DNA of 64,000 nucleotides from Octopus sinensis (taxonomy: Eukaryota). Location of the stretch: assembly GCF_006345805.1 (NCBI RefSeq), contig NW_021836126.1, positions 124,001-188,000 of the forward strand, written 5' to 3'. Shown in pieces: positions 23,833 through 30,607 of the stretch. How positions within the stretch are numbered: the stretch's first letter is position 1; every line of letters starts with the position of its first letter. A program made the position numbers and the translations under genes. The notes under the pieces are model-generated. The model did not search any database. It saw nothing but the letters and a program-made list of their open reading frames with translations, and was not told the DNA's origin.

Positions 23833-25454
23833 TTATTTCCCGCCCATAGATTTGACAGTAATATTCCCGCCAACATCAGTAGTGACGTAGACAACCTCGG
23901 ACGTGGCAGTCCACTCCCCCAGTCCTTCCAACCCCCACAGTAAACCACTCCCCTACCTCATCCCAGTACGACACCAACGGAGACACCTCCACCACTCTCG
24001 GCACACTCACACACCCCTTTTTCCCCACCAAATACTTCCTGCTCAAAGCAAGGAAGGCCTCCCTCGCTGTGGACGGGTTCGCCGTCTCCGCCTTCCAACT
24101 GTTCTTCAACGGGGCAAATTCCTCTTCACGTGACACCTCCCAAACAGCCAACCGCCTATCATTTTCCGCCAAAAATAAAACCGCGCGAAGGGACACAATC
24201 AAAAATAAACTTTTCTAGTTTAATTCCGTTGGGGGTGTCGGGGATTACTCGGAGACCGTCCTCGTCCACGAAGGGGATCTTCTTCCGTGCCACATGGTAG
24301 GGCAACTCATTCCTACCAATCACAAAAAAACCACGTGAGGGTCGCCACGATAAAATCCACAGTAAATAAATGCATACAAATATTTCCCGCCTTAAAATAC
24401 AATGACCCATCCTCTGATCTCCTTCCTCGGTCAAAGTCAGAGATCTCGCTATATTCCACTATTCCGTAGGTCCCCTCTGCTGTCTTGCAGACTGACCCCA
24501 AAGCCTCCTGTGCCTCCCTTCTCTCGATGACCTTCACCCCACACTCGGCACCCCTCCTCAATGAAGTACCCCAGGAAGACGGGATCCCCCACCTTGGCCA
24601 GAATATTGTCCACACAAAACACGTGCAAGTACTTCACACCTGTCTGGGTCATTTCTCCACCAGGCCGTTCTCTTCAAGGGCGCGAAAAAAGTCGCATTGC
24701 CATCTGTTTAATATTCCCGCCATTACAGTACTTGGACTCAATGCGAGACTGTCTTTCCTGTCCAACAATAATTTCCCGCCAAAATCAAAGGCGGGAAAAG
24801 CTGTTGTTCAAAAATAAAGACTTGAGAAGGCTTGAGTTGGAAATAGTTGTTTTCCTCGAAATATAATTTGGTGAGTTCGTTGGTGAACTCGCTGGTCATG
24901 ATGAACCAGGGAATGGAGACCTCCTTCCCGCCAAAGAGGTTCGCCAGTCGTTCCAGGCGGAGGATCCTTTCTGAGTGGAGTTGGAAAGGGATTTGTTGGA
25001 AGGAAGGCCCACGTTGAACATACCTTTGGGGTAATCCACCCCTAAACGGGTCCCTTGGCCTCCTGCAAGAAGAGCAATGGCCACCTCCCCACTACATATT
25101 GCAGATAGTCCTTAAAGTGTATTATTTTTTAAAATAATTATTATGTAAATATTAATTAATAATTTTATGTAATTTAAAGTAATTACCCATATTTTTATAT
25201 TCCTCAATTTGCTGAGGAGTGGACTGAAAAACTCCGCTCCATTCGTCGTGGCCCAAAGCTTGCAGGCCAGAATATGTTTTTTGTGAAAATTTAACAGCGT
25301 TTTGAAATTGTTGGTTTAATTCACTTAAATTTAAACTTTTTATTTGTGTAAATAAATTGTGCTTTTCTGTCTCTGACAAATCATTGTAGAAGGACAAGAC
25401 ATGTGCCTGGTTATTCTTTTCTAGGTCAGCCAACAAATCCTCTTTTGAAACCAT
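23833..25454 (-). CDS. UAP1: UDP-N-acetylhexosamine pyrophosphorylase
   Basis: [80 protein letters not shown]. Short introns, plus about three 1-nt homopolymer deletions. Confidence 0.93.
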
Positions 25455-26070
25455 ACAGAACAGAACTATTATATAATAAATTCAAATTTATATTTATTAA
25501 AAATAATAAATTAAAAAATAAATAATTATATTTATTCAGGTGGTGCCTAATTACTATTCAGTCAAACACGTCATCAATTAAATAATCAATATATATTATA
25601 TTTCCCTCCCCGAGTCTCCACAGTCGTTCGACTCACCTGCTTCCTCCATGTGGGCACACTCCGGGGGATCCTTCCACTGGACTGCTCTTCTGGGCACCCC
25701 TCCTCAGCCTCTCCTTCACGACCTCCTCCCAATTCCATCCTGTCCTTATAACTATCCAAATATCTACAACAATCACACTCCTCTCACTTCCAGAATGACT
25801 TTTTGGCGGGAAATGACTTTTGGGGGGTTGGTGGATTGGCGGGAAATCATACTCGTACACAGGCTCAGGCAACCCGAGTTTTTGGTGGAAGAAATCCCTC
25901 ACGGACAAATCCCAGCACGTTTGGTGGAATGCCACCCCACGGGACTCATCTCCTGGTATTTCTCCACCAACTTTTTTGAACAAAAAACACGTTTTTTAAG
26001 TAATTCACTTAAATATATAAATATTTATTTACCGCCCTTTTTGGTTAACCACATCAAAGCGCGGGAAATC
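23836..26070. promoter_or_regulatory. Dense cluster of E2F/DP-consensus-like motifs (TTCCCGCC/GGCGGGAA) within UAP1 and MRPL38
   Basis: Exact 8-mers at about 23837, 23864, 24384, 24714, 24773, 24790, 24925, 25805 and 25838. Near matches at about 24163 and 26059. Function is not shown. Confidence 0.5.
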
Positions 26071-26901
26071 GATTTTTGAGTTATGTCGGTAGAGGACGTA
26101 TACTATTCTGTGGTACTGTTCCACGAGCTGGAAATGGAGGACAATAAGGACAACTGATATCCCAGAGTTATTACTCTCAATATTTGAACTAAATATAATA
26201 TATTAAAATTAATATATTATTTGTTAAATATATTTAAAAGTAATAAAATAATATTACTTTATCCAGTGGAGGACTTGTGTGTCTGTGCCTTCCAATAAAT
26301 TACTGTCAAGTGAGGTCATAACCAGAGTGAAGAAATTGCCTAAATGTCCATATTTGGCCCAATCTATGCTGAAGAGTGGCTCAACAAACTGACACTACGA
26401 GTACTCAATCTCACAAAGCCACCTCAGATGCCTTAATATAATTCCCGCGCTCCACTTTGAGGCATAATTGTCATCAATCCTGTACTTGACAGAGATAGGC
26501 ACACATGGAATGAATCCCGAGTCCCCGTACAGCCCCTTGAAGACGTCGTAGTGCAGTGCCATTGTGTGCAGCCTAGACAAGTCATCCTCTAAAGTTCCCG
26601 CTTATTTATAAAATCACGTGTTTTACTCAATTCACTATTTTTTGGCGCAATTTTTGAATCACGTGTTTTAATCAATTCATCATTTTTTGGCGCCATTTTT
26701 GATTGTGTGGGGAATGAATAGGTGATGCCGATGTTATTGTAGACTGTGTTTTGGTGGGGGTATATTTCTGAGTGGTGAGTGGGGGGTACTTTCGAGTTGG
26801 TCTTGAAGGGAAGGGTCCCCTTCGTCCAGTAGAGTGTCACGGTATGAGGGACGGATTAGTCGGCCGAAATAGGAGACATTTCGATAACGAGACAGCATCA
26901 T
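25586..26901 (-). CDS. MRPL38: Mitochondrial ribosomal protein mL38 (PEBP-like)
   Basis: ALHYDVFKGLYG…FIPCVPISVKY; GVAFHQTCWDLSVRDFFHQKLGLPEPVYEYDFPP; YLDSYKD; C-terminal YNIY*. These match the mL38 pattern (FFQ..WD.SV...FH..L...EPVFE; YLD.Y; Y.IY*). The internal exon structure is only partly resolved. Confidence 0.8.
26610..26700. repeat. Two-copy ~45-bp tandem repeat inside MRPL38
   Basis: AATCACGTGTTTTA.TCAATTCA…TTTTTTGGCGC.ATTTTTG x2, encoding K(M/I)APKN.EL.KTRD. Confidence 0.8.
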
Positions 26902-28048: not shown

Positions 28049-28235
28049 TATATAACAAATAGTTTTCTGTATATTTTATTATTTTTATAACAAATCGAGT
28101 AACCTGTTAATACCTATATTATAACACAAGTCAGCTGTGTGCCTTCATTAACTGATTAATGTCAGTTATTGACACATTTGTCCTAATAAAGTGTGATAAT
28201 CCTCCAGTTATTATTACAGTAAAAGAAAAGGCACA

Positions 28236-30607
28236 TTATTCAATCAAAAGTTCATCATTTTCATCAATAGTATTCCCGTCGATATCCCTACCAATATTAA
28301 TATATATATAACTCGATTGTAAAGGCAGGCCGAGAGTAATTACTAAAACTGGCATTGTTGAAATCCCTCATAAGCCTGTCCATTGAGTTATCCTCCCACA
28401 CTACCACTGGCAGGTGGACTGGCTGGGAATGCAAGGAAGGGGGATCCACACTACCCAATCACACATAACTCAACTCGTAGTCCAATCCTTCAGGGTAGCA
28501 CATCCCTGGCACAGAAGACGGGAAAATATGGTGGGCATGTGAAATGAATAATTCAATAATATTGGTAATATCATTATAAAATTGCCTCTCAGATTCAAAA
28601 TAGGAGTTGAAGAGCATTCCAAACACAGTCCCCAGGTTTTTACTGGTCATTTCCCCCACGGACGAATTGTCGGCCACCCTAAAGTGACCCTCTCTCCTTA
28701 CTCTGCAAGAAAATGGAACAAATATCTCAATCTAAGCCAGGCAGTGCGGTCAAGTGACCACACAATCTCTCTGATCTGCCCGACCGAGTCATCCTTGGGA
28801 CTGTGGCCATATCCTTGAAGGTGGAAAGAGGGATGGGGGGTGTCCTGAACCCCCTGAGGTATGCCTTGAAGACAGAGGCATAAGTATTGACATTGGAGTC
28901 CTCCCACTCAATGCCTCCAATGGTGAGGGGGAGTACCTCCTTCGAGACAGGCCATCATTCTGGCCACTTTTTTCTGTGCTCCGGGAATGCGGAAGAGTCC
29001 CTTCGAACTGATGCCCAGTCTCCTGATGTGTTTGATACAAATGAGCATGACTGGGTGGATATCCTCGTTATTACACTTCTAGGAATCACTGGGTGGAGTA
29101 CATCCTCGATCTGTCCTTCAAACATTAGGAATTTGGCAGTCCCCATCCGGCGGCAAAGATCAAAGAGGGAATCAAAACGGGATAATGAACTGCACTCATT
29201 AATCCCATTCATCACCTCGATAGTTCGGCGATGACGTCATAGTCACGTGCGATGATTATTGAGTATATTTTTATTTCATAGTCCAGTTTAGTGAGGTACC
29301 ACTGAGTGGAGAAGAGGTGGAAGTAGGCTCGCCCGTAGTTTCTGAGCAATTGGAGCACACTGGCATTGTTTGTGTTCTCTTTAAAGGATTTTAGAGAACT
29401 TTCGAGAGTAACAATTTCCTATAATAATTAATTTGTATATTTTATAAGTATATAAAAATATATATTTACATTTTGTTCTTTATTTAAAAATTGAATTCTT
29501 AGACTTTTAAGCAACCTGACTTTATTGCCCATCTCCTTGGTCAAGTCGGCGAAGGATTCCTGAATGTTCTACCACGTTAAACCACAAGACCACTTCCAGG
29601 GATATTGGCGGGATTTCATAAGCCTCAAAATGTATTGGCGGGAAATCCTCACTGTCGAAACCAGCCGAGAAACAGGCATCAAGGGAAGCCCTCGTCAGCC
29701 CATTAAAAGACACATGTTTCTGAGTGGTCTCAAAAATGGTGTCAACAAGCCCGGAGACCTGTTCCCGCAGTCCAGTGTTGATTAACTGACCAATAATAAT
29801 ATATTCCCACATTTAATAGACTGGTGAAGCATGTGGTCTTGTAGTACGTCAGGAGGTTGTTTAGACTGAATGTTGTGATTGCACATTTTATGTAATGTTC
29901 TAGAATTTTCCAGTTTGTGCTCGTCAGTTTAATTATAATCTAAATATTCCCGCCAATTTACTTTTTTATTTTTTTGGTCATCCAACGTAAATTTTTGTCG
30001 ATAACGATTAGAAGTGGCCATCAAATGAGTGCAGTTTTGAATGTTCTACACATAGACATGCCACAATACATCATCGAGTTTTTTAATGTTGGAAATAATT
30101 TCCATCCTGGCCATGTCAGTCACATCGGTGACCTAATTTGAGTGAAAAGTGACCCACAATGTCCTGGATTATGGATTGGTGTTCCACCAGCACGTGCAAA
30201 TGGTCCCCGATTGGCTGAATGCACTCCTTCAACAACTTGGCTTCCCTTTCGTACTTTTCGACAGCAAAGTTGGTCATGAGGACTCCAATTTTGGAGAATT
30301 CAGGGGACACCTCGCTGTTTCGACTGGAATATACTTAGGGGACTACTAGTCATCAGCCACCAGGTCTGAGGGGGAGTAGTTCTTAATGTTCAGAAGTGAC
30401 TTTAAATAGTCCTGGCTGTGCTCACTCAGGCTATTTAAGGCACATTTCCACTGATCACCGATTTTGATGACCCAGTCCACCTTACTGCACAGATATTCGT
30501 GCATGTTGTCCATTTTCCCCACGTTTACTGTTGTTTTCTGCCCCACCAGGAATACCTTGGGATATGCCTTGTATTCTCTTCACGTCTGACCTTCCAAACG
30601 ACTGCAT
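28236..30607 (-). CDS. F-BAR-like coiled-coil plus RhoGAP protein (srGAP/ARHGAP4-like), multi-exon
   Basis: RhoGAP motifs YASVFKAYLR, LRYLFHFL and MTSKNLGTVFG. Upstream exons join in frame through introns (…PPISLEV|NIQESF…EMGNK|EIVTLE…ELS|SSLSRF…). FPPIHFE and WYLTKL resemble srGAP F-BAR-extension segments. The start codon is uncertain. Confidence 0.6.

Follow-up and report, generated by a model that had tools for sequence, protein, structure and literature searches.

The E2F-like word TTCCCGCC/GGCGGGAA recurs inside gene bodies of the 64,000-nt stretch of DNA analysed here (the window), which raises the question of what such a word is doing within genes. An earlier note on this DNA had proposed a general intragenic 'self' mark that would distinguish host genes from transposon DNA, with possible roles in germline licensing, amplification origins or DNA elimination. 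The present analysis, which covers one locus of one genome, leads to a different answer: within the window, the motif forms a local cluster and does not label host genes in general.

Local enrichment of the motif

There are exactly 13 exact copies, as the earlier note had counted (23837, 23864, 24384, 24714, 24773, 24790(-), 24925, 25805(-), 25838(-), 29637(-), 29947, 35026 and 59956(-)), against 0.6–1.4 expected. In 100 dinucleotide-preserving shuffles it occurred 0.61 times on average and at most 4 times, 13 being reached in 0/100, and the word is the most over-represented non-low-complexity 8-mer of the window under both order-1 and order-3 Markov models. Nine copies lie within ~2 kb (23836–25845), where 0.05–0.11 are expected locally; such a grouping was never reached in 2,000,000 uniform placements of 13 copies, the maximum within 2 kb being 7. 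All seven occurrences of the 10-mer TTGGCGGGAA (0.08–0.18 expected) fall in the 23.8–30 kb interval, where 12 of the 34 one-mismatch copies and 12 of the 15 TTTSSCGC matches are also concentrated. The eight near matches previously reported are all present, with coordinates within 1–2 nt. Since the longest stretch common to the copies is 14–16 nt, they are not repeat copies.

Most copies are carried by three genes:

23833–25454, minus strand: UAP1 (UDP-N-acetylglucosamine pyrophosphorylase), 7 exact copies and 2 near matches
25586–26901, minus strand: MRPL38 (mitochondrial ribosomal protein mL38), immediately upstream of UAP1, 2 exact copies, 2 TTTGGCGC and several near matches
28300–30546, minus strand: RhoGAP-domain gene, 2 exact copies, near matches at 29607 and 29762

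UAP1 was identified by a Pfam UDPGP match (5e-18) and by 47% identity across 94% of its length to arthropod and mollusc UAP1. MRPL38, which forms with it a head-to-tail minus-strand pair, matches the mL38 chains of the PDB (phmmer, 2e-15) and Leptosia nina mL38 (4e-18). The RhoGAP gene is named after its GAP domain, which has a Pfam RhoGAP match (1.5e-13) and a PDB match to the ARHGAP35 GAP domain, and not after its N-terminal part.

A label carried by host genes and missing from transposons would agree with the intragenic position of all 13 exact copies, none of which lies inside a recognisable transposon fragment of the window, and with the two copies found in the 34 kb beyond the main cluster, where ~0.3–0.7 are expected. 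However, nine of the 13 are held by two adjacent genes and two more by the next one, whereas ten or more recognisable host genes lack the motif, including NDUFS1 (GC-rich, GC 0.52), POU-homeobox, cathepsin, RPL23A, UBE2J-like and KH-domain genes and three RING genes. Outside the cluster, ORF peptide contexts capable of accommodating the motif are realised in only 0/45 and 3/38 cases. It is true, as first reported, that no exact copy precedes 23837, but the first 23.8 kb are not made of transposable elements only, since the NDUFS1, POU-homeobox and cathepsin genes lie there. The earlier note had itself set a one-off cluster against a general mark, and within the window the cluster is precisely that. 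The general mark thus appears very improbable.

Shape and orientation of the sites

The extended consensus of the copies, WWTTCCCGCCWWW, is that of an E2F/DP-type site. At flank positions -2, -1, +8, +9 and +10, 58 of the 65 bases are A/T and G does not occur, a symmetric preference as expected of a double-stranded site. The described E2F/DP site spans 12 bp, with a CG core between T-rich and A-rich flanks, and has TTTCCCGCC/TTTGGCGGG as consensus forms (PMC3734150). Core and flanks both agree with this description, in line with the E2F-like character initially claimed (PMC3734150). Further E2F variants occur in the same cluster (TTTGGCGC twice, TTTCGCGC and TTCCCGCG). The sites are often paired, 17–45 bp apart, with one inverted pair, and exact or near copies are present in five ultra-short introns.

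An element acting in the transcripts, such as a splicing or translation signal, would fit the presence of GGCGGGAA in the sense strand for 6/7 UAP1 copies and for 4/5 intronic copies or near copies. The sense-strand orientation over all genes is nevertheless mixed (8 GGCGGGAA versus 5 TTCCCGCC), which argues against an RNA signal, as do the inverted repeat formed by one pair and the symmetry of the A/T flanks. An RNA-level role is therefore hardly credible.

Sites within the UAP1–MRPL38 pair

The following features were located in UAP1:

23837–23844, plus strand: exact copy, GGC-GGG-AAA-TAA (G-G-K-stop) in the orthologue-like frame
23864–23871, plus strand: exact copy at the C-terminus, GGC-GGG-AAT (G-G-N), the same orthologue-like frame being assumed; part of the 14-mer TAATATTCCCGCCA
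24163–24170, plus strand: near match TTTCCGCC inside a 26-nt intron, GTTTTATTTTTGGCGGAAAATGATAG
24384–24391, plus strand: exact copy in the coding sequence, AAG-GCG-GGA-AAT (K-A-G-N)
24705–24732, minus strand: 28-nt intron GTACTGTAATGGCGGGAATATTAAACAG with GT..AG ends, holding the exact copy 24714–24721
24772–24798: inverted pair TTTCCCGCC-N9-GGCGGGAAA, exact copies 24773 and 24790
24925–24932, plus strand: exact copy in the coding sequence, GGC-GGG-AAG (G-G-K)

and in MRPL38:

25805–25812, minus strand: exact copy in the last large exon, TTC-CCG-CCA (F-P-P), ~350 bp upstream of the UAP1 start codon
25838–25845, minus strand: exact copy 33 bp from the previous one, TTC-CCG-CCA (D-F-P-P-I)
26612–26701: in-frame 45-bp tandem duplication in the coding sequence (family D1, 91% identity)

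Other near matches of the pair are found at 24679, 26060, 26442 and 26595, the last one in a candidate 29-nt MRPL38 intron. Each 45-bp unit of the duplication contains CACGTG and TTTTTTGGCGC, i.e. the classic E2F core TTTGGCGC (26641, 26686). The 28-nt UAP1 intron separates the exon piece ...LALSP (end 24733) from the (D/N)GN piece, with DGN codons from 24704. If the uncorrected UAP1 frame is real, copy 23837–23844 belongs to the 3' UTR. The inverted pair, found where the earlier note had placed it, encodes F-P-(A/P)-F-D-F-G-G-K, the orthologue consensus being L-P-C-F-D-F-D-G-K; a frame break lies within or adjoining it.

Constraint on DNA rather than protein

The motif is used in several reading frames, correctly quoted in the earlier note, on both strands, and in exons as well as ultra-short introns, which points to constraint on the DNA rather than on the protein. 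This initial interpretation is backed by synonymous shuffling of the UAP1 coding sequence (50,000 trials), which yielded 0.63 copies on average and never more than 5, versus 6 observed (P<2e-5), and by orthologue comparisons. GGC-GGG-AA is used in 4/4 GG[KN] tripeptides of UAP1, and 6/7 of its motif-compatible peptide contexts are realised. These seven contexts compare with an average of 1.28 per orthologue (n = 120). For 5/6 UAP1 sites, at most 4/120 orthologues carry a motif-compatible peptide: in the orthologues, the K-A-G-N site mostly has N or S as first residue (K in 2/120), and the G-G-K site at 24925 is T-G-K (compatible in 0/120). The MRPL38 copies 25805 and 25838 are compatible in 3/89 and 4/89 orthologues, respectively. 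Replacements at the UAP1 sites include TGK>GGK, DGK>GGK and LPC>FP(A/P), several of them at conserved residues. There is thus a DNA-level constraint beyond a codon-usage effect, which coincides with amino-acid replacements, and to judge from these alignments the motif has apparently been embedded at the cost of the UAP1 and MRPL38 protein sequences.

A neutral origin would trace the copies to a local mutational or micro-conversion bias, to a codon-pair preference, or to relaxed constraint on two decaying pseudogenes. The cluster does coincide with about nine homopolymer frame breaks (~six single-base breaks in UAP1, at least three in MRPL38), and UAP1 is fast-evolving anyway, departing from the consensus at 19% of the columns conserved at 90% or more. 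Given the frame breaks, both genes may be pseudogenes, in which case the amino-acid argument is weaker. On the other hand, decay does not make nine perfect 8-mer copies with matched A/T flanks, no codon-pair bias is seen elsewhere in the window, and the flanks of the copies lack the similarity expected of conversion tracts. The breaks are all homopolymer-length changes, with no in-frame stop and full-length similarity, which fits long-read consensus errors. A neutral by-product looks improbable.

Copies beyond the gene pair

The remaining copies are as follows:

29637–29644, minus strand: exact copy in a RhoGAP gene exon, TTC-CCG-CCA (D-F-P-P-I)
29940–29961, minus strand: candidate 22-nt RhoGAP intron GTAAATTGGCGGGAATATTTAG, holding the exact copy 29947–29954
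35026–35033, plus strand: isolated exact copy within overlapping ORFs, reading L-G-G-G-K-C on the minus strand via GGC-GGG-AAG
59956–59963, minus strand: exact copy in a TPR-repeat gene exon, ATT-CCC-GCC (E-I-P-A-F)
59432, 59872 (in the adjoining candidate intron) and 59974: near matches around copy 59956

The copy at 29637 is followed, 30 bp further downstream, by the near copy ATCCCGCC, which reads E-I-P-P-I. In the sequence, excision of the candidate 22-nt intron brings ...DDQKNKK and IIIKLTSTNWKILEHY... together as one open reading frame, and this putative intron resembles the UAP1 intron sequence. The gene holding copy 35026 gave no PDB or Pfam identification.

A predicted intragenic regulatory module

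The best explanation, to which we give about even credence, is that E2F/DP-type sites WWTTCCCGCCWWW form a homotypic cluster specific to this locus, acting as a predicted module that would couple growth-related housekeeping genes to proliferation. The putative sites lie within exons and ultra-short introns of the packed minus-strand pair MRPL38–UAP1, and the cluster extends more weakly into the RhoGAP gene nearby. An E2F-family protein (E2F/DP or E2F7/8-like) would bind the double-stranded sites, often as pairs 17–45 bp apart, and the bound cluster would serve as an intragenic module tying housekeeping-gene expression to proliferation. We infer the identity of the binding protein, transcriptional regulation through its binding, and which gene or genes respond. 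The genome of the window is hyper-compact: ~40 bp separate the UAP1 stop from its convergent neighbour, ~135 bp MRPL38 from UAP1, and ~90 bp the MRPL38 ATG from a transposon end. With intergenic DNA of only ~40–135 bp, cis-regulatory sites are almost confined to gene bodies.

Several observations count against such a module. Canonical E2F sites lie within ~200 bp of the transcription start, whereas most copies here are 300–1600 bp from the nearest start codon, two of them falling at the very 3' end of UAP1, adjoining the convergent gene. One or two sites are normally enough for E2F, and the seven in UAP1 are left unexplained. To our knowledge, UAP1, MRPL38 and RhoGAP are not among the classical E2F targets, and equally compact genes of the window have no copy at all.

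The same sites could be bound by an E2F-like or other sequence-specific protein with a locus-specific, non-transcriptional role, as an origin of replication or amplification, a boundary of chromatin at the transposon-rich block, or a protection or targeting signal in developmental DNA rearrangement. The site density (9 exact and ~8 degenerate copies in 3 kb) exceeds promoter needs, and sites are spread across whole gene bodies, including the UAP1 3' end. The cluster also begins ~450 bp or less from the right edge of a block of retroelement fragments and flanks a Tc1/mariner remnant (26992–28047). Yet no sequence feature indicating an origin or a breakpoint is seen in the window, the edges of the Tc1 remnant carry no exact copy, and animals are not known to have origins or elimination signals defined by such a motif. 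Such a role is conceivable, though rather unlikely.

Comparison with known systems

CDE/CHR elements are bound by the DREAM complex. The window has a single instance with the same layout of CDE, 4-nt spacer and CHR (GGCGC-AATT-TTTGAA, ~26644–26658), which may be due to chance in AT-rich DNA, whereas no CHR follows any of the 13 exact copies at this distance.

The 'self' mark idea finds its closest counterpart in the PATCs of C. elegans, periodic A/T clusters that license germline expression and consist of intronic A/T tracts with a 10-bp periodicity. Like the motif described here, they are DNA-level signals that lie within some genes and are missing from transposons. In contrast, the word found here is a GC-rich transcription-factor word and not an A/T tract, and no PATC-like periodicity of the motif was seen in the window.

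Transcription-factor sites inside coding exons are known from the literature on dual-use codons ('duons'). Here too, a transcription-factor motif overlaps codons, and both codon and amino-acid choice appear biased. The exonic sites reported so far mostly occur singly and are heterogeneous, unlike the homotypic array observed here, where one gene holds several perfect copies, nearly all compatible contexts are used and several replacements affect conserved residues.

Compared with canonical E2F/DP promoter sites (TTTSSCGC, optimum TTTCCCGCCAAA/TTTGGCGGGAAA), which are often paired, the core is identical, the pairing is similar (17–45 bp, including one inverted pair) and classic variants such as TTTGGCGC are also found in the cluster. 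The T-rich and A-rich flanks are common to both (PMC3734150). What differs is the distribution of the predicted sites over ~3 kb of coding exons and ultra-short introns instead of the ~200 bp or less next to the start, the presence of seven copies in one gene, and the nature of the genes, which are metabolic or mitochondrial housekeeping genes and not cell-cycle genes.

A precedent for the proposed module comes from Cryptosporidium parvum, whose genome is reduced: no upstream element is more abundant there than TTTGGCGGGAAV-type motifs, which serve housekeeping genes (PMC3734150). That organism is an apicomplexan and its motifs are upstream and genome-wide, whereas here an animal is concerned and the sites are intragenic, in few genes within the window. 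The two nevertheless have in common a reduced parasite genome, the same motif form TTTGGCGGGAAV, and a motif tied to housekeeping functions and not just to the cell cycle.

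A local cluster of one word

The 8-mer TTCCCGCC and its reverse complement GGCGGGAA occur exactly 13 times in the whole window, each copy at the position reported by the earlier note, and every near match on its list is also present. Dinucleotide-preserving shuffles of the window averaged 0.61 copies and never exceeded 4. By order-1 and order-3 Markov models of the window, this word is the top over-represented 8-mer apart from AT low-complexity sequence. The interval 23837-25845 holds nine copies, against the 0.05-0.11 expected from local models of order 0 to 2, and when 13 points were placed uniformly 2,000,000 times, the fullest 2-kb interval had 7. 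The Markov expectations, both local and for the whole window, thus rule out chance and base composition, as does the clustering simulation. The 10-mer TTGGCGGGAA occurs 7 times (0.08-0.18 expected), always inside 23.8-30 kb, where one-mismatch copies are likewise concentrated. This is a statistically extreme and real feature, organized as a local cluster plus a few outliers. Close pairing of the sites above expectation is only suggestive: by a hand estimate, gaps of at most 45 bp number seven or eight out of 24, where about 4 would be expected.

Other trivial sources of the word were discarded. The CpG observed/expected ratio of the two cluster genes, UAP1 and MRPL38, is 0.69-0.72, which is ordinary among the genes of the window and excludes a CpG-island effect; NDUFS1 is richer in GC than the cluster genes, yet has zero copies. 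Rfam and tRNA scans revealed no family or tRNA overlapping the cluster. The copies do not show the extended flank similarity of a dispersed repeat or transposon: the longest words that they have in common reach 14-16 nt, with no longer families, so they are not repeat-derived. The 14-mer TAATATTCCCGCCA is present twice, plus one copy at 13/14.

Genes carrying the copies

Genes and neighbouring elements of the cluster, with the isolated copies
23833-25454, minus strand, UAP1; Pfam UDPGP match, 47% identical to UAP1 of arthropods and molluscs across 94% of the length
25586-26901, minus strand, MRPL38, directly upstream of UAP1; PDB mL38 chains at 2e-15
26992-28047, after MRPL38, Tc1/mariner remnant with 45-nt inverted ends
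~28.3-30.5 kb, minus strand, RhoGAP-domain gene, beyond the Tc1/mariner remnant
35 kb, isolated copy in a gene without assigned identity
59.96 kb, isolated copy in an exon of a TPR-repeat gene

UAP1 contains seven exact copies, six in the coding sequence and one in a 28-nt GT..AG intron. Four of them read GGC-GGG-AAN (Gly-Gly-Lys/Asn) and one AAG-GCG-GGA-AAT, while one lies in the opposite orientation and is read F-P-(A/P). Both copies in MRPL38 are written TTC-CCG-CCA (Phe-Pro-Pro). Of the two copies in the RhoGAP gene, one is exonic and the other sits in a candidate 22-nt intron, excision of which fuses the flanking ORFs in frame. Near matches are found in three further ultra-short introns. 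On the sense strand of the host genes, GGCGGGAA appears eight times and TTCCCGCC five times, a mixed orientation that favours a double-stranded DNA signal over an RNA signal. In database searches, UAP1 had a best match of 48% identity and MRPL38 a single distant match, and there were zero matches for an exact look-up of a window ORF and for a chimeric query joining fast-evolving ORFs and a transposon ORF; the 35-kb and TPR-repeat genes gave no useful match to PDB sequences.

The locus is very compact. Convergent 3' ends are about 40 bp apart, the MRPL38-UAP1 gap is about 135 bp, and about 90 bp separate the MRPL38 start codon from the transposon end. Ultra-short GT..AG introns of 22-29 nt stand beside AT-rich introns of 60-110 nt; a core TGGCGGGAATATT is common to two of the ultra-short ones (in UAP1 and the RhoGAP gene).

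Ultra-short introns
24157-24182
24309-24336
24705-24732
29940-29961
~39.3-39.6 kb

The Tc1/mariner remnant is itself degenerate, with a broken transposase frame (DWPAQSPDINPIEHIW...) and terminal inverted repeats that are 93% complementary over 45 nt; its insertion point lies ~90 bp upstream of the MRPL38 start codon.

Host genes and transposons

The earlier note had proposed that the word is an intragenic 'self' mark distinguishing host genes from transposon DNA. The transposon fragments of the window indeed lack it, but so do at least ten identified host genes. The first 23.8 kb, described in the note as TE-rich, are not transposons alone and also hold NDUFS1, a POU-homeobox gene and a papain-family protease gene.

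Genes and elements of the first 23.8 kb (the last four without an exact copy)
1-700, possible hAT-like ORF, no Pfam match
1911-2633, minus strand, POU-homeobox gene
~2.9-5.1 kb, NDUFS1, GC 0.52
11271-11738, plus strand, papain-family cysteine protease gene
14.1-22.1 kb, retroelement fragments: integrase core, endonuclease/reverse-transcriptase domain (LINE), gag-like zinc-knuckle ORF

Beyond 30.6 kb, the UBE2J-like, RPL23A, KH-domain, RING, PA-RING and other genes contain zero exact copies. With nine of the 13 copies in two adjacent genes, the word does not mark host genes in general, at least in this window, and a general 'self' mark appears very improbable.

Several other features of these regions were observed. 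A tandem duplication of ~1986 bp (4749-8552, 96-100% identity) carries two 5S rRNA genes, at 6448-6566 and 8434-8552 on the minus strand, with identical scores (96.7 bits each), and doubles the first coding exon of NDUFS1 (4783-5145 and 6760-7134). A long gene at 31482-34006 (minus strand) contains evenly spaced Trp repeats (...CWVKWRIF..., ...FAEWKSN..., ...FNSWKNH...). It has no Pfam or PDB match; by eye, the repeats give the impression of Sfi1-type centrin-binding repeats. Near-identical ORFs (LFHFKKIIHHCTIPT... and L(V/T)DGLVNSYVQVYNQEIER...) reveal dispersed repeat families, which are presumably unclassified transposons in the gene-rich half of the window.

Dispersed repeats
35946-36359, and a second copy within 47-64 kb
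35775-36011 and 37996-38169

Constraint on the DNA

Besides introns, the word occupies four or more combinations of frame and orientation, and the suggestion that such frame independence reflects selection on the DNA held up well. When synonymous codons of UAP1 were permuted, the mean was 0.63 copies and the six observed were never reached in 50,000 trials (P<2e-5); with only the three copies that are independent of frame correction, the same permutation gave P = 4e-4. All four GG[KN] tripeptides of UAP1 are written GGC-GGG-AA, and six of its seven motif-compatible contexts (peptide stretches whose codons could spell the 8-mer) actually spell the word. Among ORFs outside the cluster, such contexts are realised in 0 of 45 cases in 1-23.8 kb and in 3 of 38 beyond 30.65 kb. 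A word driven by protein sequence or codon bias is rejected by the synonymous shuffle and by these contexts left unrealised elsewhere in the window.

The protein itself was compared through an alignment with 120 UAP1 orthologues. Where the consensus has T-G-K, D-G-K, L-P-C and [N/S]-A-G-N, the window UAP1 has G-G-K, G-G-K, F-P-(A/P) and K-A-G-N. A motif-compatible peptide is present in at most 4 of the 120 orthologues at five of the six sites, and compatible contexts number 7 here against an orthologue mean of 1.28. To the question of whether the UAP1 protein has moved toward the motif, the alignment thus appears to say yes. The two MRPL38 sites behave in the same way (4/89 and 3/89 orthologues compatible). 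Baseline divergence of UAP1 is high, with departures from the consensus at 19% of the columns conserved at 90% or more, so that single replacements are not extraordinary; their shared direction is. The synonymous shuffle, the silent contexts elsewhere and the replacements in UAP1 and MRPL38 agree: the constraint acts on the DNA. That the array is a neutral by-product seems improbable.

The reading frames call for some caution. Compared with orthologues, about six single-base corrections are needed in UAP1 and at least three in MRPL38, all in homopolymer runs; this amounts to about nine frame breaks across 23945-26150, roughly one per 250 bp. Inspection by eye showed none in three comparison sequences, the UBE2J-like gene, RPL23A and exon 1 of NDUFS1. 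A locally unpolished long-read patch is favoured, short of proof, over a (very young) pseudogene pair, since neither UAP1 nor MRPL38 has in-frame stops, similarity is full-length and every break is a change of homopolymer length. If the breaks were real, a 3' UTR would contain the two UAP1 copies nearest the 3' end and the argument that the motif overrides the protein would be weaker; the enrichment of the motif would be unchanged.

E2F character of the sites

All 13 copies contain TTCCCGCC, and seven have a T at -1 (TTTCCCGC). With the copies aligned on the motif, A/T accounts for 58 of the 65 bases at flanking positions -2, -1, +8, +9 and +10, and G for none, which gives the extended consensus WWTTCCCGCCWWW, the commonest form being ATTTCCCGCCAAW. 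The E2F consensus TTTSSCGC has 15 matches in the window against 3.6-4.4 expected, 12 of them in 23.8-30 kb. Variants clustering with the copies include one TTTCGCGC and two TTTGGCGC sites, both of which fall within an in-frame 45-bp tandem duplication of MRPL38. Sp/KLF, YY1, CSL, STAT, ETS and NF-kB are other factors for GGGAA- or GC-box-like words; set beside these, E2F seems to fit the flanks and core best. The organism's E2F genes are not within the window.

The E-box palindrome CACGTG is also frequent, with 22 occurrences against 4.1 expected (0/100 shuffles as high). Seven of these lie in 23.8-30.2 kb, two in the MRPL38 tandem duplication, and the one at 41679 is just upstream of the RPL23A ORF. 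CACGTG has the appearance of another regulatory word of this genome, more general than the first.

Possible function

Of the readings considered, the one with most support is a homotypic cluster of candidate E2F-type binding sites, selected at the DNA level. Sites would be placed in exons and mini-introns because there is almost no intergenic DNA at the locus, and the cluster would act as an intragenic regulatory module for the MRPL38-UAP1 pair. This mechanism is plausible as a working proposal: the sequence facts and the constraint on the DNA are established, whereas which factor binds, whether it acts on transcription and which genes respond is inferred. Measured to the nearest start codon, as a proxy for the transcription start, the copies are mostly 175-1600 bp away. 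Only the copies at 25805 and 25838 are upstream of a gene start (UAP1, -350/-385), inside the MRPL38 coding sequence. Such distances, together with the copy number and host genes unrelated to the cell cycle, speak against a simple promoter-type reading. Since that reading is weakened, a non-transcriptional role specific to the locus (origin, boundary or rearrangement) deserves some weight, although it seems unlikely.

The regulatory reading of the candidate sites also has a bolder form, in which E2F-type arrays are actively written into exons and 22-29-nt introns of selected genes, as intragenic control, origin/amplification or boundary/licensing signals, with enough force to have fixed replacements where an essential enzyme is otherwise conserved. 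This is doubtful; if true, the arrays would be an unusually clear case of a regulatory code overriding the protein code. The main interest of the locus lies in this possible, striking case of a regulatory code imposed on coding sequence. If functional, it would show how regulatory information is stored in a genome nearly devoid of intergenic DNA, with perfect transcription-factor sites accommodated in codons, and in introns that scarcely exceed a site in length, and amino-acid changes tolerated in a conserved enzyme for their sake. It would then offer a clean natural test of the debated dual-use codons and a way into the gene regulation of a highly reduced parasite lineage that has been little studied. 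A genome-wide pattern limited to a gene set would make a regulon readable straight from sequence.

Comparison with known systems

Neither a description of E2F clusters within genes nor a study of E2F in dicyemids came up in literature searches. In the CDE/CHR (DREAM) layout, a CHR element TTTGAA follows the CDE by 4 nt; in flanks checked by eye, it accompanies 0 of the 13 exact copies. A separate GGCGC-AATT-TTTGAA at ~26644-26658, beside a TTTGGCGC site in the MRPL38 coding sequence, has this layout and may be due to chance.

E2F/DP sites are described as 12-bp elements with a CG core between T-rich and A-rich flanks, in consensus forms such as TTTCCCGCC and TTTGGCGGG (PMC3734150). The window copies share both the core, as TTTSSCGC or in the TTCCCGCC form, and this 12-bp flank architecture. 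They differ from promoter-proximal E2F/DP sites, all 13 lying within gene bodies, and their hosts (UAP1, MRPL38, the RhoGAP and TPR-repeat genes and one unnamed gene) are not the cell-cycle and DNA-replication genes that are E2F/DP targets.

The window has 34.5% GC and many repeats. The genome of Dicyema japonicum has 36.7% GC and 49% repeats (PMC6736024), and a 2026 survey found introns so short only in D. japonicum and myxobolid myxozoans (PMC13644364); the short introns, GC and repeat load of the window agree with this published description of D. japonicum. A precedent for the word itself comes from another reduced genome, that of Cryptosporidium parvum, where housekeeping genes have the same motif form upstream more often than any other element (PMC3734150).
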